Of a stretch of DNA of 64,000 nucleotides, positions 255 through 36,924 are shown in pieces. Within the stretch, counting starts at the first letter, position 1; each line of letters opens with the position of its first letter. A program made the translations under genes and the position numbers. Source of the DNA: Octopus bimaculoides (lineage: Eukaryota); contig NC_068993.1 of NCBI RefSeq assembly GCF_001194135.2, forward strand, positions 45,159,431 to 45,223,430, read 5' to 3'. The notes under the pieces are model-generated. The model ran no database searches. It saw only the letters and a program-made list of their open reading frames with translations, and was not told where the DNA came from.

Positions 255-872
255 CATAGAGGGGTTGGACAAAATAATAGAAACACCTTAAAATTTCAAA
301 AAAATTAATTTTAATATGGTTTAAGACCGCCTTTGACAGTAATTACAGCTTGAATTCTACGAGGTATGGACTCGTACAAAGTCTGAATTGTTTCCAAAGG
401 AATCTTCGTCAATTTTTCAGCTAAACCAGTCTCCAGTTCTTGTAGTGACGATGGTGGAGGATATCGACTCCTTACTTATTTTTCTAAAATGCACCATAAA
501 TGTTCAATAATATTGAGATCTGGGGACTGTAGTGGCCAGATAAGATGTTCAACTTCACTAGAATGTTCCTCGTGCCATTCAGTAACAACTTTAGCTGCGT
601 GAATTGGTGCATTATCATCCTGAAAGATTGCGTTTTCTCCCGGAAACGGTTCCGCAACCATAGGATGAATTTGACCAGATAAAATGCTTAAATAGTCTTG
701 ACTATTAACTCTGCCATGAAGGAAAACCATTGAGCCGGTGGATTTCTAAAATATAGCCCGCCAAATCATCACAGATCCTCCTCCATGTTTAACAGCTGGA
801 AGAAGGCAGTCTGTGTCAAATGCTTCTTTTGGCTGTCTCCACACGTATACTCGGCCGGTGGTCGGAAATAAG
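255..872 (-). mobile_element. Tc1-family transposon, 3' part, truncated by gap
   Basis: IFQDDNAPIH...WPLQSPDLNIIEHLW (DD34E region), VKHGGGSVMIW, and a TIR-like end CATAGAGGGGTTGGACAAAATAAT after TA. Confidence 0.9.
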
Positions 873-1506
873 NNNNNNNNNNNNNNNNNNNNNNNNNNNN
901 NNNNNNNNNNNNNNNNNNNNNNNNNNNNNNNNNNNNNNNNNNNNNNNNNNNNNNNNNNNNNNNNNNNNNNNNNNNNNNNNNNNNNNNNNNNNNNNNNNNN
1001 NNNNNNNNNNNNNNNNNNNNNNNNNNNNNNNNNNNNNNNNNNNNNNNNNNNNNNNNNNNNNNNNNNNNNNNNNNNNNNNNNNNNNNNNNNNNNNNNNNNN
1101 NNNNNNNNNNNNNNNNNNNNNNNNNNNNNNNNNNNNNNNNNNNNNNNNNNNNNNNNNNNNNNNNNNNNNNNNNNNNNNNNNNNNNNNNNNNNNNNNNNNN
1201 NNNNNNNNNNNNNNNNNNNNNNNNNNNNNNNNNNNNNNNNNNNNNNNNNNNNNNNNNNNNNNNNNNNNNNNNNNNNNNNNNNNNNNNNNNNNNNNNNNNN
1301 NNNNNNNNNNNNNNNNNNNNNNNNNNNNNNNNNNNNNNNNNNNNNNNNNNNNNNNNNNNNNNNNNNNNNNNNNNNNNNNNNNNNNNNNNNNNNNNNNNNN
1401 NNNNNNNNNNNNNNNNNNNNNNNNNNNNNNNNNNNNNNNNNNNNNNNNNNNNNNNNNNNNNNNNNNNNNNNNNNNNNNNNNNNNNNNNNNNNNNNNNNNN
1501 NNNNNN

Positions 1507-2257
1507 GAATGTCCTCCTTCAAACGCTTCAAAACGTTGCAGTAAAACTCTCGATTGACGGTGAGGTCTAGGGGGTCGAATTCTTGATGCCCAATACCGTG
1601 GATAAAAAAACAAAAAACAAAAAACAAAAAAAAACAACGATGAACATGATCTTGATTGAGCTGCGGCTATGTCGTATCTTCTTCGGTTGTGAAAATGAAG
1701 GGTTCTTCTATAGTAACAACTGCCCTCTTCGTCCCAGGGTCATACCCATAGACTCAACCCTCGTTTCCGGTGATGATCCTCAACACGAAAGGTAAGTCAT
1801 CAGCGGCAAGCTGACAGAGATGTTGACAGACTTCGATGCGATGTTCTTTCTATTGAGAGGTCAGTGGACGGGGTACAAACCTGGCCGAGACACACCGCAT
1901 GTTCAATTCAGACGTTAGGATTGCCTGTATGGACCCATACGACAGACCAACAACATCAGCAATGTCATTGATTGTCCTCCGACGATCCTCATGCACAAGC
2001 TGATGAATTTTCTCCATATTTCCAAGGGTGATACTCGTGGCAGGTCTTCCAGATTGTTCATCGTCTTTCAGGGACGTTCTTCTGCTTTTGAAGCGCCCGT
2101 GCCACTCGGAACGTTGCATACGACATTGCTTCGTCGCCCTAAGCTTGCCGAATCATTCTCAATGTCTCTGTAGTAGACTTCCAAAGTTTAACGCAAAATT
2201 TCACGTTGGCTCTTTGTTCCAACTTCATGTCCAAGACAAAATCGTATACACGTGACC
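1507..2257 (-). mobile_element. Degenerate mariner transposase
   Basis: MKLEQRANVKFCVKL..., DDEQSGRP, DRRRTINDIADVVGLSYGS, VSARFVPRPLT, TVNREFYCNVLKRL; stops and frameshifts. Confidence 0.9.
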
Positions 2258-4564: not shown

Positions 4565-4764
4565 AATAGCCAATCAGATTTTACTGATCTGTTATGTTAA
4601 CTGGACCACACCTGGGTTCTTGTTGCATAAAATGCCTAACGACTGAATACGTAGTTAACGAACGGCAGCTACATACAAAACACCTCATTAAGTAAAAATT
4701 AGTATCTTTCTCTGCTGGCTGAAAGCTCTTTGTATTTCATCCAAATAATACCAGTGAAGAGGAA
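4565..4764 (+). promoter_or_regulatory. Candidate promoter and 5' UTR of the Cys-rich gene
   Basis: AGCCAATCAG (CCAAT at 4570-4574) and TATA-like CATAAAA at 4626-4632 in non-repetitive sequence upstream of the ATG; no TSS data. Confidence 0.35.
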
Positions 4765-4798
4765 ATGAAGGAGTTTTTATTTGGATACGTATTTGTCG
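4765..4798 (+). CDS. Exon 1 (coding part) of a 5-exon gene for a 228-aa secreted/GPI-type Cys-rich protein; MKEFLFGYVFV
   Basis: ATG at 4765; donor G|GTAAGG at 4799; ends phase 1, matching exon 2, and the join gives a hydrophobic signal peptide MKEFLFGYVFVVSILLWIPLSFG. Confidence 0.7.
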
Positions 4799-5963
4799 GT
4801 AAGGTGAAGTCTTGAAGTCTTTTTCTTCACTTTGTTTTTCGTATTTAAAAACAACTCATACATTCTATCGGAGCTTAGAACTTAAAACGACTGCAGTAAA
4901 CTAAGAAAAACTTCTCAATTTATTTTGTTTAATATGTAGATTTATAAAATATCTGCTCCTAAAAAATAAAACATAAAAATGACAACAGACGATGCAAGAA
5001 ATATATTTTATCAATTCAAATGTTTGAAATATTTATTATTGATGTTTATATATGTATTTATGTATTTTTCATACTTTAAAAGAATGTTTATTGGGTGACT
5101 GCAGTGGCTGAATCGGATAGAAAAGAGTAAAAACTATTTTAGAAATTTAGTTTGCCATTTTTTTTTGGCATTTCTACGGTTTACTTTGCTTGTTAATTCA
5201 TTATTTTGCTTGTCGTTTGTTTGATGCCGAGTTTTATTTCACTTGTGTCTTGTTTTGATGTCTCCTGTTTTTGTGAGGTTGGAGCAGTTTTTTGTGTATA
5301 ATTGGGACCGCATTTTTTTTGTTGCTTTGGGATATGTTTTTTTTTTTTTAGAGGCATCTGTAATTATTTTGCGAAACGTAAGCATTGTAGAGTGACTAAG
5401 TTGTTGTGAGCGGTCCCGTTTGAATTGTAAGAATCTTGAATTTATTTCTTGATGGCACTTGTTCAATGTGCGCTTTTACAAGTTTACAAATGTATTTTTG
5501 CTTTCTAGATTGATATGCGTGCGTGGTGTGTGAATGTGTGTGTAAATGTGTATGTGAATTTTTGTGTAAATGTATGTGTGTGTGTGTGTGTGCGCGCGTG
5601 CGCATGGTAATAATGGATTTGTGAGAAGTTGGGGAACTATTTTGCCAGATTGTTAAGATGGTAGCTAGGTGTTCAGAGCAGGGGGGGTTGTTGCTGTTGG
5701 TTTAGCGAGATATACATTAATGTGTATCATTTAGGACTAGATTGTGTCCTCTTGCAATGATATTGCTTCATTCCTCATGTTCACTTTTTCATTTATCTAC
5801 AAAAAGTTAAAAGGGAAACGTTAACAAAAGAATTACTTTAGTCATTAGAAAGATTAGAAGAAAACATGGAGGTTTCGGATCTAAAAGTTATTTTATCAGA
5901 GGTGGTCAACAAAGTTTCACATAGCAACAATTTCTATAAAAGTGAAGTAACCACATGCTTTTT

Positions 5964-6150
5964 TTATAACATCAAACTCAAGGTTTTGCCCTTTCAAAAC
6001 CTGGAAGAAACGAAACGAGCTTTTTTAGTAATTGGTTTGGTCAACCTGCCTTGTTTTTTTGTTTTCGTTATAACATCAAACTCAAGGTTTTTCACTTTCA
6101 AAACCTGGAAGAAATGAAACGAGCTTGTTTAACAACTGGTTTGGTTAATC
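5964..6150 (+). repeat. Tandem duplication with about 104-bp period, two copies
   Basis: TATAACATCAAACTCAAGG...TTCAAAACCTGGAAGAAA at 5965 and 6069. Confidence 0.85.
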
Positions 6151-6464
6151 CACTCCCTTATTAAGCTTATTAAATAAGTGGATGAGAGACATTTCTCCCT
6201 GTATAGGACGCTGGTCTGTTGCAGGTAGTTTTTCCCGCAGACGATATTTAATCCGAAACTGAAGATTAAACAATCCAATTACTTATAGGTTCTCTGACAC
6301 TACGCCAGACAGAGCGATGAAATCGTGTACTATTTTGTGGCTCTATTCAATATTAGTTATACTTACTCTCTAAGTGTTGATTGATTTGCGCACAAAGTTG
6401 GCTAACAGTGAGAAGGTACGAAATTTCGGCCTCTCAACCAGTTATATGGTACTTTAATAATTCA

Positions 6465-6800
6465 GTGATGTTGGTACTCTAATCAGTTAGATACGTTGGT
6501 GCGCTAGTCACTTGGTACATGATTCACTAGGTCTTCTTGCTAAGCTATTGATACGCTCGAGCTAGTACTCTATTCACCCGATATGTTGGTACTCTATTCA
6601 CTAGTTCATGTTGATAAGCTATTGAAACGATCATGTTAATACTCTGTTCACTCGATATCTTAGTACTCTGCTCGCTATTTCTTCTTGGTAAGCTACGGGC
6701 ACGGTCATGTTAGTCCTCTATTTGCTCACTCTTCTTGGTGAGCTATTGACACGGTCATGCTGGAACTCTATTCATCCGGTTTTCTTCGTAAGTTATCAAC
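6465..6800. repeat. Degenerate minisatellite, unit about 55-60 bp
   Basis: Recurring TCTTCTTGGTAAGCTATTGA.ACGGTCATG.TAGTACTCTATTCAC-like units. Confidence 0.6.
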
Positions 6801-7479
6801 TAGTCGATATCGCGTAAAAATAGATAACAACTAATTGATATGATTCAGAAATTTAACCTGCTAGAAATAGCTAGTAAATCACCCTTATAACTCACATTAT
6901 TGTGTTAAGAAAGGGAAAAACATATTGGATAACGTACCCCTAGATACCTGTGTACACTGTGTTTGAACAAGAAAGACAGGATGATCATGGGTGGATTATC
7001 TTTGACCGAAAGCCTAAAAAACCAGGACACACCCGAGGCTTAATAACAGGAACAACCTGACCGCAATCACGTGCTTCCAGATTTGATCTCATTCTGGGAC
7101 AGGTGACGCACGTGACTTCTACCGTTGCTTTGGGTTGACCTAAACTTTCTGAGTGAAATTGGGTGAACGGTAGCTGTATAGGAGTCCCCCTGACAGAGCA
7201 GAAGTCCCTAAACTTTTTTGCACTACGAACCTTTTGAATAATGCCACGCCGTTGGCTAAGAGAGTAGGCTAACATTACCCCTGATCGGAAAACTATTCTG
7301 TCGTAGGGTTACCCATATGCAGCTGAGTGAACTGGAGTAATGTGAAATGAAGTGTTTTGTTTAAGAACACAACACGCCGCCCGGTCTAGAAACTGAACCC
7401 ACAATGTAGCGATCGTGAGAGCATGCCCTAACCACTAGGCCATGTGCCTTCACATATATTGCATATATAATATATATAT

Positions 7480-7833
7480 CAGAGATTCTCATCCAGGGTC
7501 AATATGGGCCCCGAGGGTCCATATAAGATTTTTGGGAGTTCATGCAACAAAACAGCAAATTGGGAATCCACAATAGTATTCTACGGCCCCTGAAAAAATT
7601 TTGTTTTAGATGTATGTATTGGTGTGTATTGCAAGAAACAGCTTGCTTTCTCTCTCTGACATTTTACAGAATTCAACCTATACAAGTTAGTGTGTGAAAA
7701 ACAAAATAGGAATTTTGAAAGAAGTTTCTATAATGCTAGTTTTTAGACATCGAATGGTTCTAAGAGTCCACTAGAATAAAATAGTAATCAAAAGGGTCAA
7801 TAAATAAAATTAAAAAATGGTTGAGAACCCCTG
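7480..7833. mobile_element. hAT-type MITE, copy 1
   Basis: TIRs CAGAGATTCTCATCC and rc CAGGGGTTCTCAACC; 8-bp flank ATATATAT on both sides. Confidence 0.8.
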
Positions 7834-8382
7834 ATATATATAATGCAAAAACACCCCACAGACTGCAGTAGTCAATAAAGTAGAAATAAAATTTAAAAAT
7901 TCATTTTTTTCTGCGCGGCCCGGTAGCAGATGATCTATAACCCGGGACTGGCTAGCAGCTCGGTGGTTGGGACCCCTGTGGTAGAGTGTATTTCTTGATA
8001 GGGAATAGATATAATTAATTATCTGCTCTAACATTATCATCTGGCCCTTGGCTGCCATTAAGCGGAATCGACACTGTTACAAACATTCAGCCCAGATCTC
8101 CGATTCGCGAATATTAAGACTTGAAAGTCCTACACAATGGATATTGGTCACTGACTACCTTCTTCCATCGCCACATATAATACATATAATGTATAATGCA
8201 TACATACATACATACATACATACATACATACATACATACATACATACATAAACATACACAACATACACATACACACAAATATATAAGGGCATACTATATC
8301 TTCTTGAGATTTTACAACTAGCTATTTTGTATATATATATANNNNNNNNNNTATATATGTATGTATATATATATATATATGA

Positions 8383-8683
8383 TGAAATTAATGAAGATCA
8401 GTAGAATGGAGATTTTCACATCCAATTTTATTGTACAGTTAATTACATCGTTCTTTGCTTAGACCTACGCATGTTTCAGCTGCACACTGCTAAGTATGCA
8501 TCCTGGTGTTAATTATCGGTGCATCTTAGTGTTATTTGTGTTAATTAACACCAAGATGCACACTTAGCAGTGTGCAACAGTTTGCAGCCGAAACGTGCGT
8601 AGCTCTATGCAAAGAACGATGTAATTAACTGTATAATAAAATTGGATGTGCAAATCTCCATTCTCTTGTCTTCATTAATTTCA
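8383..8683. mobile_element. Foldback (palindromic) element, arms about 135 bp
   Basis: TGAAATTAATGAAGA...CATCCAATTTTATT.TACAGTTAATTACATCGTTCTTTGC has a near-perfect reverse complement at the other end; inner GCACACTGCTAAGT..GCATC.TGGTGTTAATTA arms also pair. Confidence 0.9.
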
Positions 8684-8904
8684 ATATTTTCACACCGGAA
8701 TCTATGTAGTCTTTGAAAGGAAATTCGGATTTACCAAGCGAGGATAATAAGCGTGTCTAGTAAATTTCCACTAACTTGAGTTTCACCAACATTCGCTGTG
8801 GCTAGCCGGCGTTGAGACCCGACATAAGAGCTAACACGGTTACGGCCAGGATTACATATCCCTCGAAACTATTCTTGGAAAGATTACTTTTATATGCATA
8901 TATA

Positions 8905-9300
8905 GGCGCAGGAGTGGCTGTGTGGTAAGTAACTTGCTTTCTAACCACATGGTTCTGGGTTCAGTCCCACTGCGTGGTACCTTGGGCAAGTGTCTTCTAC
9001 TATAGCCTCGGGCCGACCAAAGCCTTATGAGTGGATTTGGTAGACGGAAACTGAAAAAAGCTTTAAATATGTATGCATGCATGCATTTGTGTTTGTCCCC
9101 ACCACCATTGCTTGACAACCGATGTTGGTGTGTTTACATCCCCCTAACTTAGCGGTCCGGCAAAAGGAACCGACAGAATAAGTACAATGCTTACAAAGAA
9201 TAAGTCCTGGGGTCGATTTGTTCGACTAAAGGCTGTGCTCCAGCATGGCCGCAATCAAATGACTGAAACAAATAAAAGAATAAAAGAAAAGAATAAAAGA
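8905..9300 (+). mobile_element. tRNA-derived SINE family B, near full length
   Basis: Head GGCGCAGGAGTGGCTGTGTGGTAAG, B-box-like GGGTTCAGTCCC, (AAAAGAAT)-like tail. Confidence 0.88.
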
Positions 9301-9783
9301 ATATAAATTTAAGTCACAATGTATGGATTCAACCAATAAAAAAAAAAGCTCCTTAATGTAACATTCAACAAAACATTGAGAATGTATAGTATGATACAAG
9401 AGAAAACCATAAAGAGTGTATAAAGTTATACATAATAGAGAAATATAATATGATAAAATTCATTTAACCATTGGGAATTCTTATATAAAAACAATTGTTT
9501 CGCAACTTAATAAAACATTGATAGATGATTTATTCTATTCTATTTTGTAATAAGTAAATCACTTATATGTTTGCATTAATATAAACTATCTTTAAAATAA
9601 TGTAGTTATTAAGCTAGCTCATTGGGTTAGGGGAATCCCATGTTTAGGTTGTGTATATTAAAATATAATGAAGTAAATTACCTATGCATGTTCTATTGAG
9701 TTGCGAAACAATTGTTGTTATAAAAGAATTTCTGATGGTTAAATACGTTTTATCATACTATATTTTTCTCGTTATTTATAACT

Positions 9784-9849
<66 letters not shown>

Positions 9850-9899
9850 GTATATATATGTGTGTGTATATAAATATGTATATATGTATATATATGCAT

Positions 9900-9955
<56 letters not shown>

Positions 9956-9996
9956 ATCCATACATACATATATATTTATGCACACACACACACACA

Positions 9997-10027
<31 letters not shown>

Positions 10028-10054
10028 ACATACATACATAGATGTATATCTACA

Positions 10055-10085
<31 letters not shown>

Positions 10086-11177
10086 CATACATACATGTAC
10101 CATCATTTTATACATGAAAATGTTCTTCAGCGTCATTTTTGTCAAAACGTGTGTAAATCCTCTGGAGGTGTAAAGAGACATCTACTCTTTCATAAACAAC
10201 ACAAACGAAATAACAGAATCAGAACTGAAACACGATTGCTATATTTACGAAAGTCTTTAAGAGAATCCCTAACCTCAAATGCCATAACGGTTCTCACTTG
10301 AGTAACTAACGCTATATTTGTACTTGAAATGGTTAAGCCTTGTTTCAGAACAGACTGCTTCCGTTCATATATATATATATATATATATATANNNNNNNNN
10401 NNNNNNNNNNNNNNNNNNNNNNNNNNNNNNNNNNNNNNNNNNNNNNNNNNNNNNNNNNNNNNNNNNNNNNNNNNNNNNNNNNNNNNNNNNNNNNNNNNNN
10501 NNNNNNNNNNNNNNNNNNNNNNNNNNNNNNNNNNNNNNNNNNNNNNNNNNNNNNNNNNNNNNNNNNNNNNNNNNNNNNNNNNNNNNNNNNNNNNNNNNNN
10601 NNNNNNNNNNNNNNNNNNNNNNNNNNNNNNNNNNNNNNNNNNNNNNNNNNNNNNNNNNNNNNNNNNNNNNNNNNNNNNNNNNNNNNNNNNNNNNNNNNNN
10701 NNNNNNNNNNNNNNNNNNNNNNNNNNNNNNNNNNNNNNNNNNNNNNNNNNNNNNNNNNNNNNNNNNNNNNNNNNNNNNNNNNNNNNNNNNNNNNNNNNNN
10801 NNNNNNNNNNNNNNNNNNNNNNNNNNNNNNNNNNNNNNNNNNNNNNNNNNNNNNNNNNNNNNNNNNNNNNNNNNNNNNNNNNNNNNNNNNNNNNNNNNNN
10901 NNNNNNNNNNNNNNNNNNNNNNNNNNNNNNNNNNNNNNNNNNNNNNNNNNNNNNNNNNNNNNNNNNNNNNNNNNNNNNNNNNNNNNNNNNNNNNNNNNNN
11001 NNNNNNNNNNNNNNNNNNNNNNNNNNNNNNNNNNNNNNNNNNNNNNNNNNNNNNNNNNNNNNNNNNNNNNNNNNNNNNNNNNNNNNNNNNNNNNNNNNNN
11101 NNNNNNNNNNNNNNNNNNNNNNNNNNNNNNNNNNNNNNNNNNNNNNNNNNNNNNNNNNNNNNNNNNNATATATATAT

Positions 11178-11534
11178 AAATTTGTTGTTGAAAATGCACC
11201 TTCATTTGAAAAACTTGTCATTGTTTTAAAATGAATTTATTTACATATATACCAAACTAGTTTCAACAATATTTTTGTTTATCAATTATAAAAATTTAGA
11301 ATTATGAATTAGGAAAGCATGTTTAAAAGTTTCAATATTGATAAGTTTAGATGTTCATAACAATCAATTTAAACTTGTCAACATTGAAACTTTTAAACCG
11401 GCTTTTCTAATTCACAATTCTAAATGTTTACCATTGATAAACAAAAAATATTGTTGAAACTAGTTTGGTAAATAAATTTATTTTATAACAATTACAAGGT
11501 TTTCAAATTTAAGTGCATTTTTAACAACAAATTT
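11178..11534. mobile_element. Foldback element, arms about 170 bp, carrying Penelope-LTR-like hammerhead motifs
   Basis: AAATTTGTTGTT.AAAATGCAC and CCAAACTAGTTTCAACAATATTTTT are mirrored on the right arm; loop of about 20 nt near 11350-11369. Confidence 0.9.
11427..11472 (+). ncRNA. Minimal type I hammerhead-like motif with a U3-A8 core
   Basis: TTTACCA-TTGATAA-ACAA/TTGT stem-GAAAC-TA-GTT-TGGTAAA; 7-bp stem I and palindromic ACTAGT stem III. Confidence 0.45.
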
Positions 11535-11587
11535 GCCTATATTTTTTCATGCGTGGAAATACACCTCTTCTTTTGTTATATATATAT

Positions 11588-12000
11588 ACTTAGTTACTTA
11601 AGCACTTTATTTCCTGTGAAGCATAGGCCATCGAAGGCTTCTCTCCACTTTTCTCAACTCTGGGCTGCTTCTCTCCTGTTGGAGCTCTGCTCTTCCTTGC
11701 AGCCTTGTTTCAGATTTTGTTCCGCTGTGTCATATGCTTCTCTGAAGGAAGGCTTTCCTATCCCGGGTCTTGTTAGTTTCGAATAGTTATCGATGTCTTT
11801 CTAAGTTTGCTTTTTTCTTTGTAGGAATATTGCCTCTAAGCAAACCCGTTTTTACATCTGGGAAGATGTAGCCCATATTATTTTGACCTTTATCTTTTGT
11901 ACTGTTCAGCATAGGAGGTCCTGCCTGGAGCTTGCCCTTTGCTGGCATAGCTCTCAGGGTCTTTGAAGTACATAGACCACCACGTTGCAACAAGGACTGG
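11588..12000 (-). mobile_element. Internally deleted (bipartite) RTE-derived element
   Basis: On minus, a 5'-like segment GACCCTGAGAGCTATGCCAGCAAAGGG is joined to a C-terminal remnant EKWREAFDGLCFTGK* with a short (TAAG)-like tail. Confidence 0.55.
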
Positions 12001-12039
12001 ACCTTATAGTATATATATATATATATATATATATATACG

Positions 12040-12079
<40 letters not shown>

Positions 12080-13326
12080 CATGCATGTGCGTGTGTGTTA
12101 CTGTAAATATTGTTCTCCTCCAGTATTTCTTTACTAGTCCCTTCAATTGTCATTTGAACATAAAATTCAGGATTTGCATCAGGATTTCAAAATCATCGTA
12201 ATTTTCTCTTCTGGATAAGGTCATTTTAGTGTCGTCTTTCTAAAATGTTCATCAGACTTAAAAAATAAGCATACACGGAACACCAAAAATCTTTTCATTG
12301 TAAATATTTGTTCTACATCTCAACTGTTCAATACTTCCACCCTGTTTATGGGCAAAACATGGCTTTGTAGTTAAAAAGTTTATTTTTCAATTGCGTGGCA
12401 TATGTTTCAGTCTCAATGCGCGGTATCCAATGCTTCGTAAACAAAACGTAAGTACTCTCTTGTGTCCTAGGATTCTTAGAGCCGGTTATTCGGTTTCCAT
12501 GGCATCTAACTGACCGAGACAACAACAGTTCCCTAGAACGGGATTCCTGTCCGTTACGAGTTATTCATCGCTGAGTGGACCTGACCAGCGTGAAATGAAG
12601 TGTGTTACACCAGAACACAATGCAACGCCCGATCCTGGAATCGAAACCACGGTCTTGCGATCTTGAGTGCAACAGCTTTACTAGGCCGAATGCTTTCACA
12701 AATGAAGCATGACATATAGAAAACCGCGAAAGCTATCGGAAGGAGCATTGATGTTCCGGGATGGTAGACATATTCCGTCGCTCGGTTTAACGACACCACA
12801 TAGTCCTTGGGCACCCTTCGGCAGAGTCCATTCTTTTGTTAGTATTCTGATATGTTTCCGAGTTTAGAACAATGGAACAATGCCACTGCTTTCTACTAGT
12901 CACGGAAAGCATGAAGGTTATAGCTTCTATCATTCGGTATCTGATTAAGTCAGAAAAAGAAGTAACTAAAACAACAACAACAACAACAACAACAGCAACA
13001 ACCTAAAATCAAATCATCTGATCAACATCCAGGAAAAAAAGAAACTCCTCTACAAACAAAGCAAAGTAGCTTCCCTAGTGAGTGTCTACTCTTCAACAAA
13101 CTGACAGACTGGCCCCTTTGCAGATCGTTCAGCCCAGTGGAAATTCCTTCAAATCTTAAATTACCGTCTTTAAAATATGAATAAATTGGATATTGTAGTC
13201 GAGAGATGCATAATAAGATAGGACGGTCAAGGCTTGATTGTTTTTAAAAGTAGATCTACTCAATCAGGCGCTTATTTTGAGGTTAAAAGATTAAACAACT
13301 ACCACAACAACATGTACACAAAAATA

Positions 13327-13532
13327 ATTCTTTTTAACTTTGGCTCAAGACCAGCAGTTTGAGAAGAGAGGGATTCGATTGTACTGACTCCAGTACTCAA
13401 CAGGTACTTTATTTTACTGACCCCCGAAAGGATGAAAGGCAAAGTGGACTTTGGTAGAATTTGAACTCAGAACAAGAAGAAATGCTGCTAAGCATTTTGT
13501 CCAACGCACTAACGGTTCCACAAGTTCGCCGC
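13327..13532 (-). mobile_element. tRNA-derived SINE family A
   Basis: rc reads GCGGCGAACTTG...AAATGCTTAGC...CTGAGTTCAAATTC...TTTGCCTTTCATCCTTTCGG. Confidence 0.8.
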
Positions 13533-13798
13533 TTTCCGGTGCATACATAGTAGGACAGGATAGTCAAAATTTGACTGTTTTCAAACGTAGATCTACTTGA
13601 TAAAGTGCCAATATTGAGGCTTAACAACAGCCACAAAAAAATGCAACGGCAACACAACAGCAATAATAAAACCCCAAAAACTTGCCAGGGAGAAGAAGAG
13701 GATTCAGCACAGCTTTATAACATTTGAGCATTCACACATTGATTAAAAATTAAAAAAAAAAAAAATGTCGATTAACCGTCTTATCATTTCCATTTCAG

Positions 13799-13943
13799 TG
13801 AGTATTTTGCTGTGGATACCTTTAAGCTTTGGGTGTGTTGAAGAAGCCATGAAGAAATATCTCACTTGTCTTACTCGGACTAATATTACTCAAAATATCA
13901 TGACATCCAACTTGACTGCAGAACACATCGAAGCTATGTGCAG
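13799..13943 (+). CDS. Exon 2; VSILLWIPLSFGCVEEAMKKYLTCLTRTNITQNIMTSNLTAEHIEAMCR
   Basis: Acceptor ttatcatttccatttcag|, donor CAG|GTAATC, phase 1 in and 2 out, open frame, 3 Cys, two N-glycosylation sequons (NIT, NLT). Confidence 0.88.
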
Positions 13944-14030
13944 GTAATCGAAATATAAACTCGCGAGCGCTACATCCAAAACTTTTCCTATGCAACCTTT
14001 TAAATCTTTTAATATCTTATCCTTCACATT

Positions 14031-14245
14031 GGCGGCGAGCTGGCGGAAACGTTAGCACGCCGAGCGAAATGCTTCGCGGTATTTCGTCTGTCTACTTTCT
14101 GAGGTCAAATTCCTCCGAGGTCGACTTTGCCTTTCATCCTTTTGGGGGTTGATAAATTAAGTACTAGTTGCGTATTGGGGGTCGATCTAATCGACTGGCC
14201 CCTCCCCCAAAATTTTAGGCCTTGTACCTAGAGTAGAAAAGAATA
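14031..14245 (+). mobile_element. tRNA-derived SINE family A, full length
   Basis: GGCGGCGAGCTGGCGGAAACGTTAGC head (A box), GAGGTCAAATTCC (B-box-like), GTCGACTTTGCCTTTCATCC body. Confidence 0.88.
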
Positions 14246-14597
14246 TTTTACTTATTTCAGTCATTTACCTGCGGCCATGCTGTGTTATCACCTTGAAGGG
14301 ATTTTTAGTCGAATAAATCGACACCAGGAATTATTTTTTTTTAAGCCAAGTATTTATTCTATAGGCCTCTTTTGCCGAACTGCTAAGTTACGGGGACGTA
14401 AACACAACACCAGTTGTCAAGCAGTGATGAGGGGATAAACACACACAAAAACACACGCATAGGCGCGCGCACACACACACACACACATTCCGAGGCTAAA
14501 GCCGAAGGCATTTGCCCAAAGTGCTATACAGTGGAACTGAACCCGGAACCAGGTGGTTGAGAAGCAAGCTTCTTACCGCACAGCCAAACCTGCGCCT
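14246..14597 (-). mobile_element. SINE family B, tail-to-tail with the family A copy
   Basis: Reverse complement of the 8905 family (CAGTGGAACTGAACC...ACAGCC..ACCTGCGCCT). Confidence 0.82.
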
Positions 14598-14807
14598 AAG
14601 ATTTCGAATAATCCTAAAGCAAAAAAAAAAAAAAAAAANNNNNNNNNNNNNNNNNNNNNNNNNNNNNNNNNNNNNNNNNNNNNNNNNNNNNNNNNNNNNN
14701 NNNNNNNNNNNNNNNNNNNNNNNNNNNNNNNNNNNNNNNNNNNNNNNNNNNNNNNNNNNNNNNNNNNNNNNNNNNNNNNNNNNNNNNNNNNNNNNNNNNN
14801 NNNNNNN

Positions 14808-15269
14808 TTTAGTTGTATGTATTGGAATGTATTGCAAGAAACAGCTTAGTTTCTGTCTCTGACATTTTACATAATTCTTTTCTGCTCTAGGCATAAGGCC
14901 CGACATTTTTGGGGAGGGGGGGCAGTCAATTAGGTCGACCCAGTACACAACTGGTACTTAATTTATCGACCCCGAAAGGATGAAAGGCAAAGTCGACCTC
15001 AGCGGAATTTGAACTCAGAACGTAAAGACAGACGAAATACCGCTAAGCATTTCACCCGGCATGCTAACGTTTTTGCCAGCTCGCTGCCTTTAAATTTTAC
15101 GTAATTCAACGTATACAAGACAATGTGTGAAAAACAAAATAAGAATTTTGAATGAAGTTTTTTTTATAACTAGTTTTTAGACATCGAATGGCTATAGGGA
15201 TCCACCAGAATCAAATTGTAATCAAAGGGGTCCATCGATAAAAAAAAAATAAATGGTTGAGAAACCCTG
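14808..15269. mobile_element. hAT-type MITE, copy 2, with a nested SINE; left end lost in gap
   Basis: Colinear with 7610-7833 and ends ...GGTTGAGAAACCCTG. Confidence 0.8.
14878..15093 (-). mobile_element. SINE family A with a 14-bp TSD
   Basis: TSD ATTTTACATAATTC (14864-14877) and ATTTTACGTAATTC (15094-15107). Confidence 0.9.
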
Positions 15270-16649
15270 CACTAGAGAAAAGAAAGCCATAGTTCTTGGG
15301 TGAAAGCACGGTAGTCTTTGGGTTGCAGTTTAATCGATGTTATATATGAGTGGCTGCTATGAAATGATCATCAAAGATTATGAGGTTAAGGAATGCTCAG
15401 TAGTGAGGAAGTAAAGTAAATGCATTGATAATGATTGGGTTGAATTGACGTACAAATTTGTTGCTTAGTGGAGCAGCAGAGAACATTCTGATAGCAGTAG
15501 AAGAGACAGAGAGACAGATAGCGTTTTGGTTGTAGTTAGTGATAATTTTCAAATGACTAGAAATTCCATTGTTGTAAGCTGTCTAGAATGTTTGTATACG
15601 TAGTTGTATTAGTAACAGCAGAAGTACCTCCAAGAAATGTACGAAATGTGGGTCTTGTTTGAAGTTCGTAAAAGGGTCAGAAATTGTTCAGAAGTATGGA
15701 ATTTTCTGACCCCGATGTCGTAAACTAGCCTTTGAATTGCAACTTAGAGGGAATGCTATGAAAAGATCATGAGAAATTATGAGGTATAGCATTTCTACAA
15801 GGACTGAAGATTTTAGCTGTGGGTTATAGAAGATGTGTAGTCGCAATACTGATTTCTTGATATGCACAACGGTTGCACGGGGTGGATTGCTGTAGTGGAA
15901 TTATATAACTTCGGGCCGGCGAAAGTTTTCTGCATGAAAGCAGACAGAAACGACATAGAAACCCACTGGACAGACTGTACATATACATTGTCTTTGACAA
16001 GACTGGACTTTTTGTGGGATTTGTTTCGACCTTATGCATTCTGAGTTCAAATTCCGCCGAGGTCAGCTTTGCCTCTTATCTTTTCAAGGTCGATAAAAAA
16101 ATACTAATCCAGGCTAGATTGGTGGATCAGATTCCTTGTAGTATTTGTTCTAGCTTTTTACGTTCTGATTTCAAATCCTGCCGTGACGTACATGGGTGGT
16201 AGACTAAAATTTTTGTCTTGTTTAACACCACTACTCGAGATCTTGGGTACCTTTAGCAAAATCAACTTGGTTGCAAGCAATGGAGCCGGGTTTCTGGTCT
16301 GAGAATATCCTCCTCCCTCCTTCTTACTATGAGACCCCGTGAGGGACAATGAACACTACATTCCTTCCTAACTAAAAGATTAGAAAAAAAGGGAGGAAGG
16401 GGAAGTAACTACGATTTTTGTCGTTTAGTCAAAAGCGGAAGAAGAAATACCCATGACCTATTTACGTCCTCTAACATTACTTGAGAAATACAGAAAAGCA
16501 ATGTGTTTTTCTTTCTGTTTTTAAATCTGTCGCAAGTGATTTTTCAGGGTGAGGAGATTTAACTATTATTTCTTGAAGATCGAATGTAGTTATGGTTTGA
16601 AATGAATCTGCCACATCAGATCTAAACGAGGGTATATTTTCGTTTGTAG

Positions 16650-16783
16650 GGAGAAAAAAACACTGTTTCAGTGTATGAGTAAAGTAACCGAGTGTTCAAC
16701 GTATACACGAGAGATGCTTCTCACAGGAATCGACATTAATTCAATGCGTCAGGCTTATGATAAATTGTGCCAACGGAAGGACG
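16650..16783 (+). CDS. Exon 3; EKKTLFQCMSKVTECSTYTREMLLTGIDINSMRQAYDKLCQRKD
   Basis: Acceptor tatttt-cgtttgtag|, donor G|GTAAAT, phase 2 in and 1 out, open frame, 3 Cys. Confidence 0.88.
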
Positions 16784-17619
16784 GTAAATACGCATACATT
16801 TACTTCTCTTCTTTGTATTTGTGTTTTTGTTGTTGTTGTTGTTGTTGTTCTTCTTCTTCTTCTTCTCCTCCTCCTCCTCCTCCTCTTGGTTCTTGTTCCT
16901 CCTTTTTCTCATCATCATCATTGTCGTCATCCTCCTCCTCCTCATCAAAGTACTTTAAAGTGAAGAGGGGTACTCACTTCACGATAAGTACCCATGCGAC
17001 CTTAGCATTTCTGGAATAGCAAATCTCAGCAAAAAATGCTTGATAGAGAAACACTCTACATATCAGATGAAGGTGATGTTTCTTTTAAATTTGAGGTTTA
17101 ATGAACAATAAGGACAACAGAAACAATGAAGTCCTTAAACCCCTACAATGCCCCTAAAAGTACCGATTAAATGTCACTAAATCCTATTTCTGTAGAAGGT
17201 TTTTCACATGTGATCAGGAGCTACTTCAAAGTATCACTACGGCACAACCTGCAACTGAGGCGTGATGCTGTTCCTAAAACAATATTCAATGCCATCCGTA
17301 AAAAAGACTACTCCGGGATAAATATACACACGTACATATCAACAGAGGTGTTATTGGTGAAACATTCCCATCACAACTTTTGTCAAAAAGAATCTTGATA
17401 TAGTTGTTTGGGAGGGAAAACAAAACGCAGATATAGTCATAGATGTCCACTAACTTACAGATGTAATCATCTGTTTCAAATGTATCGAGAAAGATAGTGT
17501 TTACAGATAACCACCTCGAAATAGCTACCTTGACTATACATTCATATCTATAGAGGTAGTTATTGGCAAATTTGGCAATATGAATACATCTTTTCAATGA
17601 TAATCGTGAAAAGTATATA

Positions 17620-18467
17620 CTGTAATAACCTCACTTTACGAGGACCCACTTTACGAGACTCCGGGTTTACGAGTTCTATTTTATAATAAATATAAAAAGG
17701 TTAAACAGCCATTTTGTGTGTACGGTAACGTCGCAATATGTGGCAACACTGATTCTGACGCATCTGCACAGCTGCATGTAGCGACGAAGTAAAATGACGG
17801 CATAAAATTTCAATGTCTTAGTTTGCGCTTGCGCTTCGTTGAGAGAGATTATTATATGTTAATTCTTCGTGCCACATATTTTATATTGAATACGTGTATT
17901 TACACTAGTATTTTCAACATTTTAAAACCCATCCAATATGTCTAAACGAAAGTGTTCAACGGACACCGTCAGGAACAAAAAGAAACGAAAAACCATCACT
18001 TTGGAAACGAAACTTTGAACGAAGTGCAAAAGTTTCTATTACCATAACAAATGTTTCTGCGTGTTACCAAGAAATTTGTAAAAATAGTTTCTTCTCAGCA
18101 AGCAACTCAAGACTTGCTTTTTTAAAAAGAAAGTTACAAGTCCGTCTACGAGTGCTTGTGAATCGGCGGTCGCGTCTACAAGTGATGGCGTACGCGAATC
18201 TAGTGCGAGTTAAAGTGATTCAGAAAACGATTATAATATTTTTAATCATAAATAATCTTGACATTCTTTTTACTTTACATAAAATATTCTTTACATTCTA
18301 CTGCTATTTTATTGCCATTTATTTACGAGTATTATAAATTTTATAGGTAAAATATTTTTCTGCGAACGAATTACTATATATAAGATTGTTACTACGGGAA
18401 ACTTACGAGCTTTCGCTTTACGAGCAGTCTCCGGGAACAAATTAACTCGTATACCGAGGCATTACTG
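17620..18467 (+). mobile_element. Tigger/pogo-like non-autonomous element, 848 bp
   Basis: TA flanks; TIRs C(T)GTAATAACCTCACTTTACGAG and rc CAGTAATGCCTCGGTATACGAG; subterminal TTACGAG repeats; N-terminal remnant MSKRK...KKRKTITLETKL from 17938. Confidence 0.8.
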
Positions 18468-18533
18468 TACATACTTACATGCATACAATATGCACATACA
18501 TACAATATGCACATACATACAATATGCACGTAT

Positions 18534-18921
18534 TTGTTGTTGTTGGCACTCCGTCGCTTGCGACGTCGATGGTTCCAGTTGATCCGATCAGCGGAACAGC
18601 CTGCTCGTGAAATTAACGTGCAAGTGGCTGAGCACTCCACAGACACGTGTACCCTTAACATAGTTCTCGGGGAGATTCAGCGTGACACAGTGCGACAAGG
18701 CTGACGCTTTGAATTACAGGCACAACAGAAACAGGAAGAAAGAGTGAGAGAAAGTTGTGGTGAAAGAGTACAGCAGGGTTCGCCACCATCCCCTGCCGGA
18801 GCCTCGTGAAGCTTTTAGGTGTTTTCGCTCAATAAACACTCACAACGCCCGGTCTGGGAATCGAAACCGCGATCCTATGACCGCGAGTCCTCTGCCCTAA
18901 CCACTGGGGCATTGCGTCTCC
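18534..18921 (-). mobile_element. tRNA-derived SINE family C, full length
   Basis: rc head GGAGACGCAATGCCCCAGTGGTTAGGGCAG, B box GGTTTCGATTCCC, (CAA)n tail; matches the 40890 copy. Confidence 0.9.
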
Positions 18922-19284
18922 ACATGCACGTATATACTTGCGTATCTACATACATGCGATCATATGAGAAGTAAATATGGTCTTCAGAACTTTCTGCATG
19001 CATTAAATCATTGGCTCGCAATGTGTTTGCCGTACCAGTGCTCATATCAACATTTGTGCTACTCCATTGGCTGTTAGATGCAGTCCGGGCTATTGGCATT
19101 GAACTACTAAAATTGTTCATTCATGTCAGAAATTTCCACGTCAGCAGTGATGTAGACTGCTTTTACTTAAAAAAGAAAACAAAGCAGAAGAGGCTAAACA
19201 TCGATTCGAACAGCCTTTGAATATCGCATCATATCCCCTCAACCAACATCTGCAAACTGATCTGGTTTTCCTTTTCTGTTTCAG

Positions 19285-19432
19285 AATTCACCCGTGATCT
19301 TCCTTGCCTAGAAAAATATTCCAGCGCCATGGATAAGTCTTTTGCCGCAGTGGTTGAAGAACGCAGCGATTTAAGACAGAAATTATCCTACTCCGACATC
19401 ACATTTGACGAATACTTCGAGAAATATTGCCC
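19285..19432 (+). CDS. Exon 4; EFTRDLPCLEKYSSAMDKSFAAVVEERSDLRQKLSYSDITFDEYFEKYCP
   Basis: Acceptor ttttccttttctgtttcag|, donor CC|GTACGT, phase 1 in and 2 out, no stop codons in the joined frame; not in the ORF track. Confidence 0.87.
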
Positions 19433-19950
19433 GTACGTAAATAAAATGAAAAAAATGTGAAAAAAAAAAAGGAAAAGTATCATTATCCTACTTCCAAAAC
19501 TTCCACAAATTTCCACCACAACCACCATTACCACCACAACCACCAACACCACCACTGTGACGATGAAGCCGTCGCCGCCGTCCACGATGACGACGTCGAC
19601 GGCCACTATCATCATCATCACCACCAGCACTGCCACATAAATCAATGGGGGAGTCCTCTACGTAGCCATTTCGACAGGGCGGGGGTTATTCGCCAAATTT
19701 CCAAATTACACCCAACCGTCATAGATAAGGTAAAGGACATTAAATAACATAGCCCGACATTCCCTTAGTTTCAAAAGACTGGTGGATGGTCACGACTGAA
19801 ATGCCTTATCAAGGGTCTCTCGGACCACGGCTGAAGGCCCTCATTTGGGGATAAACAACAGCAACTAAATGAGCAAACAAGCTAGATTCTATATGGTCGT
19901 TCGCCTTGCTAGAAATAACAGTCAAATCTTCATCGTATTATAACACTGTA

Positions 19951-20167
19951 CGAGGGGGTGCTGAAAAGTTCCTGGCTTTGGGTAAAAGAAAATGCAAGAG
20001 GATCAGTTAATTATGATTTTATTGAACATATTCCCCTTTCAGATTCACACATTTATTGCAGCGGTCCTTCAGTTTTTCTAAGCCCAGTAAAAGAACTCGG
20101 AAGGTTGGGCTGCCAACCAGGCCTTTCATGATACCCTTAAAGCCAGCAAAATTTCAGCTCCCCCTCG
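19951..20167. mobile_element. 217-bp mariner-type MITE in intron 4
   Basis: TA-CGAGGGGGTGCTGAAAAGTTCCTGGCTTT ... AAAGCCAGCAAAATTTCAGCTCCCCCTCG-TA. Confidence 0.9.
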
Positions 20168-20580
20168 TATTGTTCAGTCATATCTGACGGGGTTCACAAC
20201 CTCTACCACCGCCGCTGTCGTCGCCTCTGCTGTCCCTGGGGTATTTCCTGAAGTAAGTACCTAGCCTTTGTTACACTAACTACCTCTCTACTCATGGATA
20301 AGCCAAGGAGAATACGTTTACAGCATCTATGGAACCGCAGGGGATGGTAGATATTGGTTAAGTACAACCGTACTAATCTGCCTTAGTTGTAAGTATTAAA
20401 AGACAATTTAGCTTCAGTTCTTGTAAGCACGAAGAAAACTGACTTTTACTTCTATCTTCCATTGCTATTTGTTTAACATTAGTCGTTTGTTAGAAGATAC
20501 TGTTTTTTTCTTTTTAAACACGTGTAAATATATAATGTCATGACTTTACGAGAATAAATTTGTTTGTCTTGTATTTGCAG

Positions 20581-20806
20581 AATGTGGAAGAAAGTAATTG
20601 ACAATTTGCCTGAAGTTATCGGATGTCCACAGACGTTCGTTGAACTTTTACAAGACTACTTCTATTCAATGATGCCGGAAAAGTGTAAAGCGATTACAGA
20701 GCAATATCGACCTGAAGACAATGGTTCCTCCAATGTCATCTTTAAGGGAGGACAAACGTACTTTAGCTTCATATTATTTCTTATCTTCGTCTTTGCTACT
20801 GAATAA
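20581..20806 (+). CDS. Exon 5 (last coding); MWKKVIDNLPEVIGCP...KCKAITEQYRPEDNGSSNVIFKGGQTYFSFILFLIFVFATE*
   Basis: Acceptor ttgtcttgtatttgcag|, phase 2 in, TAA at 20804-20806; small-residue NGSS, a spacer and a hydrophobic tail resemble a GPI signal; total CDS 687 nt = 228 aa + stop. Confidence 0.88.
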
Positions 20807-36157: not shown

Positions 36158-36924
36158 NNNNNNNNNNNNNNNNNNNNNNNNNNNNNNNNNNNNNNNNNNN
36201 NNNNNNNNNNNNNNNNNNNNNNNNNNNNNNNNNNNNNNNNNNNNNNNNNNNNNNNNNNNNNNNNNNNNNNNNNNNNNNNNNNNNNNNNNNNNNNNNNNNN
36301 NNNNNNNNNNNNNNNNNNNNNNNNNNNNNNNNNNNNNNNNNNNNNNNNNNNNNNNNNNNNNNNNNNNNNNNNNNNNNNNNNNNNNNNNNNNNNNNNNNNN
36401 NNNNNNNNNNNNNNNNNNNNNNNNNNNNNNNNNNNNNNNNNNNNNNNNNNNNNNNNNNNNNNNNNNNNNNNNNNNNNNNNNNNNNNNNNNNNNNNNNNNN
36501 NNNNNNNNNNNNNNNNNNNNNNNNNNNNNNNNNNNNNNNNNNNNNNNNNNNNNNNNNNNNNNNNNNNNNNNNNNNNNNNNNNNNNNNNNNNNNNNNNNNN
36601 NNNNNNNNNNNNNNNNNNNNNNNNNNNNNNNNNNNNNNNNNNNNNNNNNNNNNNNNNNNNNNNNNNNNNNNNNNNNNNNNNNNNNNNNNNNNNNNNNNNN
36701 NNNNNNNNNNNNNNNNNNNNNNNNNNNNNNNNNNNNNNNNNNNNNNNNNNNNNNNNNNNNNNNNNNNNNNNNNNNNNNNNNNNNNNNNNNNNNNNNNNNN
36801 NNNNNNNNNNNNNNNNNNNNNNNNNNNNNNNNNNNNNNNNNNNNNNNNNNNNNNNNNNNNNNNNNNNNNNNNNNNNNNNNNNGTATATGTAAATATGCAA
36901 AGGTATGTATATATAGAGATAGAG

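Follow-up and report, generated by a model that had tools for sequence, protein, structure and literature searches.

A conserved five-exon gene for a probably GPI-anchored, ten-cysteine protein at the Octopus locus annotated as zinc finger protein 680

Introduction

What does the locus at about 45.16-45.18 Mb of Octopus bimaculoides chromosome CM046613.1 encode? In RefSeq it carries the name "zinc finger protein 680", whereas an earlier note on the DNA alone proposed a hidden five-exon gene for a GPI-type, disulfide-rich protein. The window analysed here is a stretch of 64,000 nucleotides, and positions are counted from its first letter. The gene cannot be called hidden: UniProt already lists a 228-aa protein of identical sequence (A0A0L8I8M2, uncharacterised, Octopus bimaculoides), and exons 2-5 are present in RefSeq under the misleading zinc-finger name. 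In the database records, the 228-aa product is recorded on no contig. We consider it likely that the gene product is a 228-aa glycoprotein precursor of the secretory pathway, an N-glycosylated, GPI-anchored surface binding module, and that the RefSeq name comes from a chimera.

Gene structure and conservation

When all AG...GT exon combinations within the stated limits of the gene were enumerated, a single exon set remained that fits both 687 nt of coding sequence and ten cysteines at residues 24, 35, 59, 68, 75, 100, 112, 153, 169 and 189. This solution matches exactly the five exons, GT-AG sites and phases 1,2,1,2 that had been read from the DNA (Table 1). A polypyrimidine tract precedes each of the AG acceptors, all donors are GT, an in-frame stop (4720-4722) lies upstream of the ATG, and AATAAA motifs occur near the 3' end of the gene at 20802, 21325 and 21476.

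Table 1. Features of the gene and its 5' flank in the window.
Feature	Positions	Strand	Description
Putative 5' UTR / proximal promoter	4696-4764	+	At least 98% identity to O. sinensis, directly before start codon
Exon 1	4765-4798	+	34 nt; ATG, MKEFLFGYVFV plus one base; donor G/GTAAGG, phase 1
Intron 1	4799-13798	+	9000 nt as assembled
Exon 2	13799-13943	+	145 nt, phase 1 to 2; remainder of putative signal peptide, C24, C35, N40, N49, C59
Intron 2	13944-16649	+	Contains N gap 14639-14807
Exon 3	16650-16783	+	134 nt, phase 2 to 1; C68, C75, C100
Exon 4	19285-19432	+	148 nt, phase 1 to 2; C112, C153
Exon 5	20581-20806	+	226 nt, TAA stop; C169, C189, NGSS 201-204 (candidate GPI attachment site), spacer, hydrophobic tail 214-226

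The orthologue in O. sinensis keeps every splice site, all ten cysteines and all three N-glycosylation sequons, with an open frame and no indels in 687 nt. Its exons are about 96-100% identical to those of O. bimaculoides (34 of 34 nt in exon 1, whose donor is also kept, and 95.9%, 98.5%, 96.6% and 96.9% in exons 2 to 5), compared with 91.2% for non-exon sequence; the flanking introns are about 9% diverged and carry many indels. Against the same non-exon background, the 5' island in Table 1 is defined by 100-bp windows with starts at 4696-4776 and at least 98% identity. Between the two species dN/dS is about 0.5, from 20 substitutions only, a value that indicates weak constraint.

Three runs of N interrupt the assembled gene, at 8342-8351 and 10392-11167 in intron 1 and in intron 2 as listed; all three are intronic and none touches an exon, so the reading frame is unaffected. 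The orthologous O. sinensis introns are gap-free (intron 1 is 8096 nt there), and family proteins match their region at the four known exons only. In particular, the flanks of the intron 2 gap align to positions 37364 and 37862 of the O. sinensis sequence L002, between which a family-like coding block is absent. The gap of 776 N lies inside a 2.8-kb stretch (8811-11645) that carries a dispersed repeat and has no O. sinensis counterpart, which marks the stretch as a lineage-specific, repeat-rich insertion.

Two paralogues, LOC106869698 and LOC106869697, have the same architecture of five coding exons with phases 1,2,1,2 and a 34-nt exon 1; exon sizes are 34/145/134/148/226 here versus 34/151/146/145/193 and 34/148/146/172/202 in the paralogues. 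Their first exons end in phase 1 at a GTAAG donor and encode MNRILCGCIFA and MDGILPRYIFV, respectively. In tblastn comparisons the paralogues match exon 2 from their residue 12 onward, bivalve and gastropod homologues match exon 3 at 34-45% identity, and Argonauta homologues match exon 5 at E 4e-11. Moreover, the paralogue N-termini align residue for residue over the junction of exons 1 and 2 (YVFV/VSILLW versus YIFVV/TIFLW, with the slash at the junction). By comparison with the orthologue and paralogues, this junction of the 228-aa product appears to be real. Taken together, the orthologue, the independent protein matches and the paralogues with common exon phases confirm, at the level of sequence comparison, a genuine five-exon protein-coding gene, far beyond chance.

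A family of mollusc proteins

A phmmer search of 1.84 billion proteins returned 19 family representatives at E < 1e-3. Independent proteins in this library of 1.8 billion match at E 1e-20 to 1e-56; for individual octopod members, with similarity over the full length, the phmmer E values are 1e-40 (P0006), 7.6e-30 (P0008), 1.1e-20 (P0010) and 1.2e-18 (P0011). The relatives come from Octopus, Argonauta, five bivalve genera and one gastropod, a distribution that bears out the suggestion of an uncharacterised cephalopod or mollusc family. All ten cysteines are invariant across 13 aligned cephalopod, bivalve and gastropod domains. In the octopod family, C59, C68, C75, C100, C112, C153, C169 and C189 are invariant in 7 of 7 sequences, and C24 and C35 are present in every aligned sequence that includes the N-terminus. 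The cysteine positions noted earlier are therefore not only reproduced but conserved family-wide, and the alignments show the gene to belong to a mollusc family with a domain of about 170 aa and ten invariant cysteines.

The closest set comprises LOC106869697, LOC106869698, LOC106869700 and LOC106869701, their O. sinensis and O. vulgaris counterparts, and GAB1608877 and GAB1611258 of Argonauta hians, with 26-34% full-length identity to the query. Like the query, these octopod paralogues and Argonauta homologues have a putative signal peptide, ten aligned cysteines and a GPI-like tail, and all are uncharacterised. The query gene is a solitary copy on the same chromosome as the paralogue cluster, 1.35 Mb away, and some paralogues (P0005, P0006) differ from it in having two or three tandem domains. 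The Argonauta proteins have in common with the query a pre-tail motif, [DE]NGS..V.FKGG, which suggests that they are its closer relatives.

Outside the cephalopods, the set consists of uncharacterised proteins from Mizuhopecten (XP_021374631), Pinctada (KAK3104452), Potamilus (KAK3592447), Saccostrea (XP_062594249), Solemya (KAL5015198) and Physella (XP_059145019). One or two C-terminal domains of each match the cephalopod profile at 42-56 bits, with the ten invariant cysteines, putative signal peptide and GPI-like tail of the query; unlike the query, these proteins are 365-995 aa long and have extra N-terminal Cys-rich domains. Their homologous domain has 14 cysteines rather than 10, and the octopod branch thus appears to have lost two disulfides.

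The protein and its membrane anchor

Hydropathy analysis gives only two hydrophobic peaks, at residues 8-20 and 217-223. The first falls in a putative signal peptide, read from the sequence and its hydropathy, with an h-region at 4-19 and S at -3 and G at -1 before C24; exon 1 codes for its first half. Sequons are present at N40 (NIT), N49 (NLT) and N201 (NGS). At the C-terminus, G202-S203-S204 (or S203-S204-N205) is followed by the spacer NVIFKGGQT and the tail YFSFILFLIFVFA, then TE. By rules of thumb for GPI signals, the elements expected are all present: small residues at omega, omega+1 and omega+2, then a polar spacer some 8-10 residues long, and finally a hydrophobic tail without cytosolic extension. 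When the query and 15 relatives were compared, a signal-like N-terminus and a hydrophobic tail after S/G/N-rich residues were found in every full-length protein, and both the putative signal peptide and the NGS-spacer-hydrophobic tail of the earlier note are thus recurrent features of the family. No enzymatic motif was found in the protein.

These features suggest a maturation pathway in which the N-terminal signal peptide would be cleaved after G23, the ten cysteines would pair as five intradomain disulfides locking the helices, and N40 and N49 would be glycosylated. In the ER, the C-terminal signal (G202-S203-S204, spacer and 13-residue hydrophobic tail) would be exchanged for a GPI anchor, so that the mature acidic domain (~21 kDa, pI ~5.1) would lie on the outer face of the plasma membrane. 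Judged from its architecture alone, the most likely role is that of a cell-surface binding or recognition module, i.e., a receptor, co-receptor, or matrix or ligand binder.

The same gene model could instead yield a protein that its hydrophobic C-terminal segment anchors across the membrane, or one that loses this segment by cleavage and is secreted. Hydrophobic C-termini can serve as tail anchors, and some relatives show weak similarity to the insect DUF1397 proteins, which Pfam describes as soluble and found in haemolymph. However, 13 residues with only T-E behind them fall short of what a typical membrane span with a cytosolic stop-transfer sequence requires, the small G-S-S residues 9-10 positions upstream of the tail form a classical omega-site arrangement, and this tail arrangement recurs in all relatives (e.g., ...SGSSTSAASLSALLGSFLVSIVLFVL). 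We therefore regard a transmembrane or secreted form as unlikely and favor GPI anchoring.

Predicted fold and comparison with known families

The AlphaFold2 model of the domain (pLDDT 87.7, pTM 0.80) consists of eleven helices, and the ten-Cys domain is thus predicted with confidence to be all-alpha, in line with the helical fold that had been guessed. In a Foldseek search of this model against the PDB, nothing was listed better than E 1.9, with TM ≤ 0.32.

The earlier note recognised no named family, and in Pfam none scored above its cut-off for the query. CPG4 (PF15481, C. elegans chondroitin proteoglycan 4) ranks second among the query's Pfam matches and best among Cys-rich families, at 15.3 bits and E 0.03 against a cut-off of 32.7; it is matched by the query only, and membership was rejected. 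Membership of DUF1397 (PF07165), the insect 27-kDa haemolymph glycoprotein family, was likewise rejected, the query scoring 12.2 bits (E 0.11) against a gathering cut-off of 25.7 and the domain consensus sequences giving no match. DUF1397 is the only Pfam family matched by more than one unrelated member of the family. The distant bivalve relative P0018, the only family member to pass, scores above the cut-off (32.9 versus 25.7 bits), and its segment homologous to the query reaches 17.6 bits alone. It is the N-terminal domains that give the strongest DUF1397 signal, and their match to the octopus profile is no more than marginal. DUF1397 proteins resemble the query family in being secreted, Cys-rich glycoproteins, but they are described as soluble, unlike the query with its putative GPI anchor.

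On the DUF19-type resemblance suggested in the earlier note, the evidence is divided: UniRef attaches its own label "DUF19 domain-containing" to several of the paralogues and of the bivalve relatives, whereas hmmscan found zero matches to PF01579 (DUF19) at E ≤ 1 in 24 family members and none at E ≤ 10 in the query. DUF19, a nematode 12-Cys domain, and CPG4 are like the query in being extracellular Cys-rich domains. The vertebrate GPI-anchored co-receptors GFR-alpha/GAS1 and RGM are analogous in layout, with a signal peptide, disulfide-locked helical domains and a GPI anchor, and this analogy suggests how the octopus protein may act, as a co-receptor or a binding module on a tether. No GDNF-receptor-family match was listed in the Pfam scans at E ≤ 10, and on this result and the Foldseek values above GFR-alpha/GAS1 membership was rejected. 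One bivalve protein gave a sub-threshold match to RGM_N (21.1 bits).

Origin of the zinc-finger annotation

The RefSeq model is a 362-aa protein in which a C2H2 zinc-finger ORF from about 25 kb upstream is connected to exons 2-5. The window begins 11.5 kb downstream of this ORF (positions 10001-10699 of sequence L001) and does not include it, and tblastn detected no C2H2 finger in exons 1-5 or anywhere in the window. We considered whether the RefSeq protein, five C2H2 fingers fused to exons 2-5 with exon 1 at 4765 unused, could be the main product. The fusion is present in XP_014785990.1 and three further O. bimaculoides accessions and in XP_036364249-52 of O. sinensis. It is in frame and uses a common exon 2 acceptor, identical in the RefSeq models of both species, together with a GTAAGA donor in phase 1 at the same position within the finger linker.

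Several points stand against this reading: (i) The zinc-finger ORF runs beyond the donor to its own stop, at 232 aa in O. bimaculoides and 314 aa in O. sinensis, and is therefore a complete gene by itself. (ii) In the fused product, half a signal peptide (SILLWIPLSFG) would come to lie midway in a nuclear-type protein. (iii) The fusion would place a ten-Cys, extracellular-type domain with a GPI-like tail in the cytosol. (iv) Zinc fingers are absent from family members of every other species. (v) In exon 1 no base differs between the two species, and the first exons of the paralogues are its homologues. That the fusion is the main product thus seems quite improbable, and "zinc finger protein 680" is best explained as a read-through chimera. 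In such a step, a donor inside the upstream C2H2 ORF would splice to exon 2 and skip exon 1, which, being a first exon, would have no acceptor. Transcription-induced chimeras that arise by read-through typically lack the downstream gene's first exon. The occurrence of the zinc finger-exon 2 junction in RefSeq for two species, with several transcript accessions each, suggests that such transcripts do exist.

That the locus is a decaying, non-functional family copy, a pseudogene in the making, is very improbable: the dN/dS value, the distance from the main cluster and the O. vulgaris annotation, in which the gene has only a truncated 160-aa model, are set against a frame open in both species, with splice sites, ten cysteines and three sequons kept and zero indels in 687 nt between introns that are about 9% diverged.

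Implications

This gene points to a small molluscan family that is absent from the literature, reaches threshold with no Pfam model and has nothing of related structure in the PDB; families like this are common in lophotrochozoan genomes. It would be a long shot that the ~170-aa ten-Cys helical domain is a fold without experimentally solved counterpart that defines a mollusc-wide GPI-anchored surface family, with an octopod expansion that gave rise both to genes with one domain and to forms with tandem domains, and perhaps with a lineage-specific function in cell recognition or at a chemotactile or neural surface. Separately, and equally as a long shot, the zinc finger-exon 2 chimera that RefSeq has for two Octopus species might be a transcript under conservation and regulation instead of noise. 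Wider interest would arise only if expression or binding data link the family to a cephalopod-specific tissue or function. The value of the finding is mainly one of annotation: a locus called "zinc finger protein 680" in two Octopus species has a conserved product that is extracellular and probably GPI-anchored, and the error passes into tallies of both C2H2 zinc-finger genes and surface proteins in octopus.

Gene model

A five-exon gene had been read from the sequence by the earlier note, with an open frame of 687 nt, phases 1,2,1,2 and ten cysteines in the product, and no exon coordinates were supplied. We enumerated all AG...GT combinations between the ATG at 4765 and the stop at 20806, requiring that length, those phases and the ten cysteines. 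The enumeration was exhaustive and left a single exon solution, so the proposed gene could be placed exactly (see table). All splice donors are GT, most of them GTAAG-like, and every acceptor is preceded by a polypyrimidine tract. The product has 228 residues, sequons at N40, N49 and N201, and hydrophobic peaks only at residues 8-20 and 217-223 in the hydropathy profile.

Coding exons and other features of the locus. Positions are those of the window unless L001 (O. bimaculoides locus with upstream flank) or L002 (orthologous O. sinensis locus) is named.
Feature	Position	Strand	Description	O. sinensis (L002)
E1	4765-4798	+	34 nt	28141-28174
E2	13799-13943	+	145 nt	36271-36415
E3	16650-16783	+	134 nt	41629-41762
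E4	19285-19432	+	148 nt	45016-45163
E5	20581-20806	+	226 nt, TAA stop	46781-47006
C2H2 zinc-finger ORF	L001 10001-10699		232 aa	10001-10945, 314 aa
ORF fragment	746-1627	-		
ORF fragment	27245-27655	+		
ORF fragment	28266-28595	+		
ORF fragment	52027-52419	+		
Low-complexity ORF	19457-19747	+	His/Asp-rich, HHNHHYHHNHQHHH...DDDVDGHYHHHHH; intron 4, directly after exon 4	
Helitron helicase-like N-terminal domain fragment	48748-49071	-	PF14214, E 1.2e-12	

With 38% G+C and 19 N gaps, the window has the character of a draft eukaryotic assembly. The N runs within the gene (8342-8351 and 10392-11167 in intron 1, 14639-14807 in intron 2) are intronic, and therefore the reading frame cannot be broken by gaps. 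Nor is an exon concealed in them, because the orthologous introns of O. sinensis contain no N, tblastn matches of family proteins at that locus are confined to the four known exons, the O. sinensis protein aligns with exons 2-5 without any gap, and the paralogues likewise have five exons. We consider the gene model very probably correct. Looking for a further paralogue elsewhere in the window returned none, no Rfam family reached the gathering score anywhere in the window, and an exact-sequence look-up of the 228-residue protein on contigs, for transcript assemblies, had nothing on record.

Repeats and transposon remnants

The largest gap (776 N) lies in a 2.8-kb segment of intron 1 (8811-11645) that has no O. 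sinensis counterpart and includes a dispersed repeat (8884-9296) matching several other places in the two loci at 82-85% identity; on these grounds the segment is a lineage-specific insertion. The repeat carries a tRNA B-box-like motif (GGTTCAGTCCCACTGCG), with similar motifs at 3593 and 33518, and the segment also has long microsatellite tracts. Just after exon 2, within intron 2, lies a repeat of ~110 bp (~14031-14143), probably a SINE-like element; at least 15 more copies, 82-91% identical, occur in the 57-kb O. sinensis locus.

The ORF directly following exon 4 is most probably simple-repeat sequence read in translation, and non-coding. Downstream of the gene, the Helitron fragment and the repetitive ORFs beside it (49993-50633, minus strand, with a weak STPR-repeat match) are transposon debris. 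The four ORF fragments (e.g., ...PHPPYSMDIVPSDNHLFHSLQNHL) we take to be remnants of Tc1/mariner transposases and retroelements; Pfam gave a weak zf-RVT match for the one at 28266 and no match at E <= 0.01 for those at 27245 and 52027.

Conservation in O. sinensis

The O. sinensis orthologue keeps the open frame and every splice site without a single indel. Its exons are 95.9-100% identical to those of O. bimaculoides, compared with 89.5-94.5% in the 300-nt flanks, and all ten cysteines and all three sequons are retained. The two species differ by 6.5 synonymous and 13.5 non-synonymous changes (dN/dS ~0.5). The gene is functional, under modest constraint. Identity to O. sinensis is 98% or higher in several intronic 100-bp windows (5196-5336, 5416-5515, 6216-6435 and 14356-14455), compared with a background of 91%; neither an ORF nor any similarity to the family was found in them, and they could be statistical fluctuations or regulatory elements.

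A small mollusc family

In an exhaustive HMMER search, 19 of 1.84 billion representatives matched at E < 1e-3: Octopus paralogues (O. bimaculoides, O. sinensis, O. vulgaris) and proteins of Argonauta hians, of the bivalves Mizuhopecten, Pinctada, Potamilus, Saccostrea and Solemya, and of the gastropod Physella, as anticipated by the suggestion of an uncharacterised cephalopod or mollusc family. No squid or cuttlefish protein was among the matching representatives. Four paralogues (LOC106869697, LOC106869698, LOC106869700 and LOC106869701) form a cluster at 46.52-46.60 Mb of CM046613.1, 1.35 Mb downstream of the gene. Some of the clustered paralogues have two or three tandem ten-cysteine domains.

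The ten cysteines of the query are invariant in a 13-sequence domain alignment; the bivalve and gastropod copies of the domain have four more. With a profile made from the cephalopod alignment, one or two C-terminal domains of the bivalve proteins are detected at 42-56 bits, the N-terminal domains being marginal. All full-length members have a signal-like peptide at the start and, at the end, small residues followed by a hydrophobic tail. The architecture is conserved and of the secretory type, with a disulfide-rich helical domain.

The family could not be tied to a named one, in keeping with the failure to recognise any from the sequence. Pfam gave nothing at threshold for the query, with sub-threshold matches to CPG4 (15.3 bits, cut-off 32.7) and DUF1397 (12.2 bits, cut-off 25.7). 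DUF1397 is the sole biologically plausible recurrent match, in 3 of 24 family members, and its cut-off is passed only by KAK3104452 of Pinctada (32.9 bits), of which the segment homologous to the query, scanned alone, scores 17.6 bits. PF01579 (DUF19) matches none of the 24 members at E <= 1, though UniRef names several of them 'DUF19 domain-containing', and hmmscan of majority-consensus domain sequences (all, cephalopod and bivalve) matched neither DUF1397, DUF19 nor CPG4. A search of the 5.8-billion-protein collection with a profile of the 13-sequence mollusc alignment found no match, and therefore no Pfam-annotated relative that would link the family with a named entry. These extracellular cysteine-rich domains (DUF1397, DUF19, CPG4) may be distant superfamily relations of the family. 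Literature on the family accessions, DUF1397 and 'DUF19 domain' yielded proteome lists and no functional study.

Predicted structure and proposed role

A full-length model based on eight aligned sequences was mediocre (pLDDT 70.7). The domain model based on 13 sequences was confident (pLDDT 87.7, pTM 0.80) and consists of eleven helices without strands, in agreement with the helical fold that had been guessed. Foldseek found no significant match in the PDB for either the full-length model (best E 0.58) or the domain model (best E 1.9, TM <= 0.32), and the best E for the domain model in the viral BFVD was 1.2. Searching PDB sequences with the family profile gave chance-level matches only (best E 0.084).

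The signal peptide would be cleaved after G23, the ten cysteines may form five disulfides, and N40 and N49 may be glycosylated. The putative GPI signal comprises a nine-residue spacer and a 13-residue hydrophobic tail, with the protein ending two residues later; the anchor would be joined at G202/S203, leaving a mature acidic domain of ~21 kDa tethered to the outer leaflet. Judged from these sequence features, GPI anchorage is likely. The protein is without a catalytic motif, and by analogy with GPI-anchored helical cysteine-rich proteins it may serve as a binding or recognition module; any specific ligand would be a far less secure proposal than the anchor itself.

Existing annotation and the zinc-finger fusion

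The window is 100% identical to chromosome CM046613.1 of GCA_001194135.2, its position 1 corresponding to L001 position 21549. Searched against 5.8 billion proteins, the gene product gave a single cluster, made up of UniProt A0A0L8I8M2 ('Uncharacterized protein', O. bimaculoides, 228 aa), which is identical to our model, and the RefSeq and O. vulgaris entries that follow. In RefSeq the gene appears as a 362-residue 'zinc finger protein 680' (XP_014785990.1 and three more accessions) and, in O. sinensis, as 'zinc finger protein 680-like isoform X1' (XP_036364249.1-52.1, 362 aa). The O. vulgaris entry CAI9732015.1 (160 aa) starts at a Met within exon 3 and is a truncated orthologue. One gene thus has three differing models across three Octopus annotations. 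A 79-residue ORF of unspliced intron 4 and exon 5 (MSCICR-LWKKV...) was also seen on a 1.1-kb Logan contig from another octopus sample. The exact 228-residue model has been publicly available from the first O. bimaculoides gene set onwards, and the error is the RefSeq name. The gene is therefore not hidden; the biological reading in the earlier note was largely right, and its claim of novelty falls.

The 362-residue models share the exon 2 acceptor, in phase 1, and take residues 1-145 from a C2H2 ORF (L001 10001-10436) that precedes the window start by 11.5 kb and exon 2 by ~25 kb. That this exon is concealed in a gap of the window was rejected, the exon being placed in L001 upstream of the window. 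The fusion would use a GTAAGA donor within a finger linker (ACA G/GT AAG in O. bimaculoides, ACA A/GT AAG in O. sinensis). The zinc-finger ORF is complete in both species, extending beyond the RefSeq donor to its own stop.

Exon 1 at 4765 is identical to O. sinensis at 34 of 34 positions with its donor kept (probability ~0.04 at background divergence), lies within an island where conservation is 98% or higher, the background being 91.2%, and follows an in-frame stop 42 nt upstream of the start codon. In the RefSeq paralogues LOC106869698 and LOC106869697 the first coding exon is exactly 34 nt long, in phase 1 with a GTAAG donor, and is followed by an intron of 4-9 kb and an exon 2 opening with homologous codons; their N-termini (MNRILCGCIFA/VTIFLWIP and MDGILPRYIFV/VTIFLWIP) align with MKEFLFGYVFV/VSILLWIP of the query. 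This evidence favours exon 1 at 4765 over the zinc-finger exon. In the fusion, moreover, half of a signal peptide would come to lie midway through a nuclear-type protein. On both grounds we conclude that the 228-residue protein is the gene's own product, and we infer that the zinc-finger fusion is a read-through chimera skipping the acceptor-less first exon, such skipping being known behaviour of transcription-induced chimeras. The fusion transcripts may be genuine but rare, or may be artefacts of modelling. The gene belongs to a small mollusc family and is already catalogued, though uncharacterised, and, as a useful by-product, the RefSeq 'zinc finger protein 680' of two Octopus species can be recognised as a two-gene chimera.
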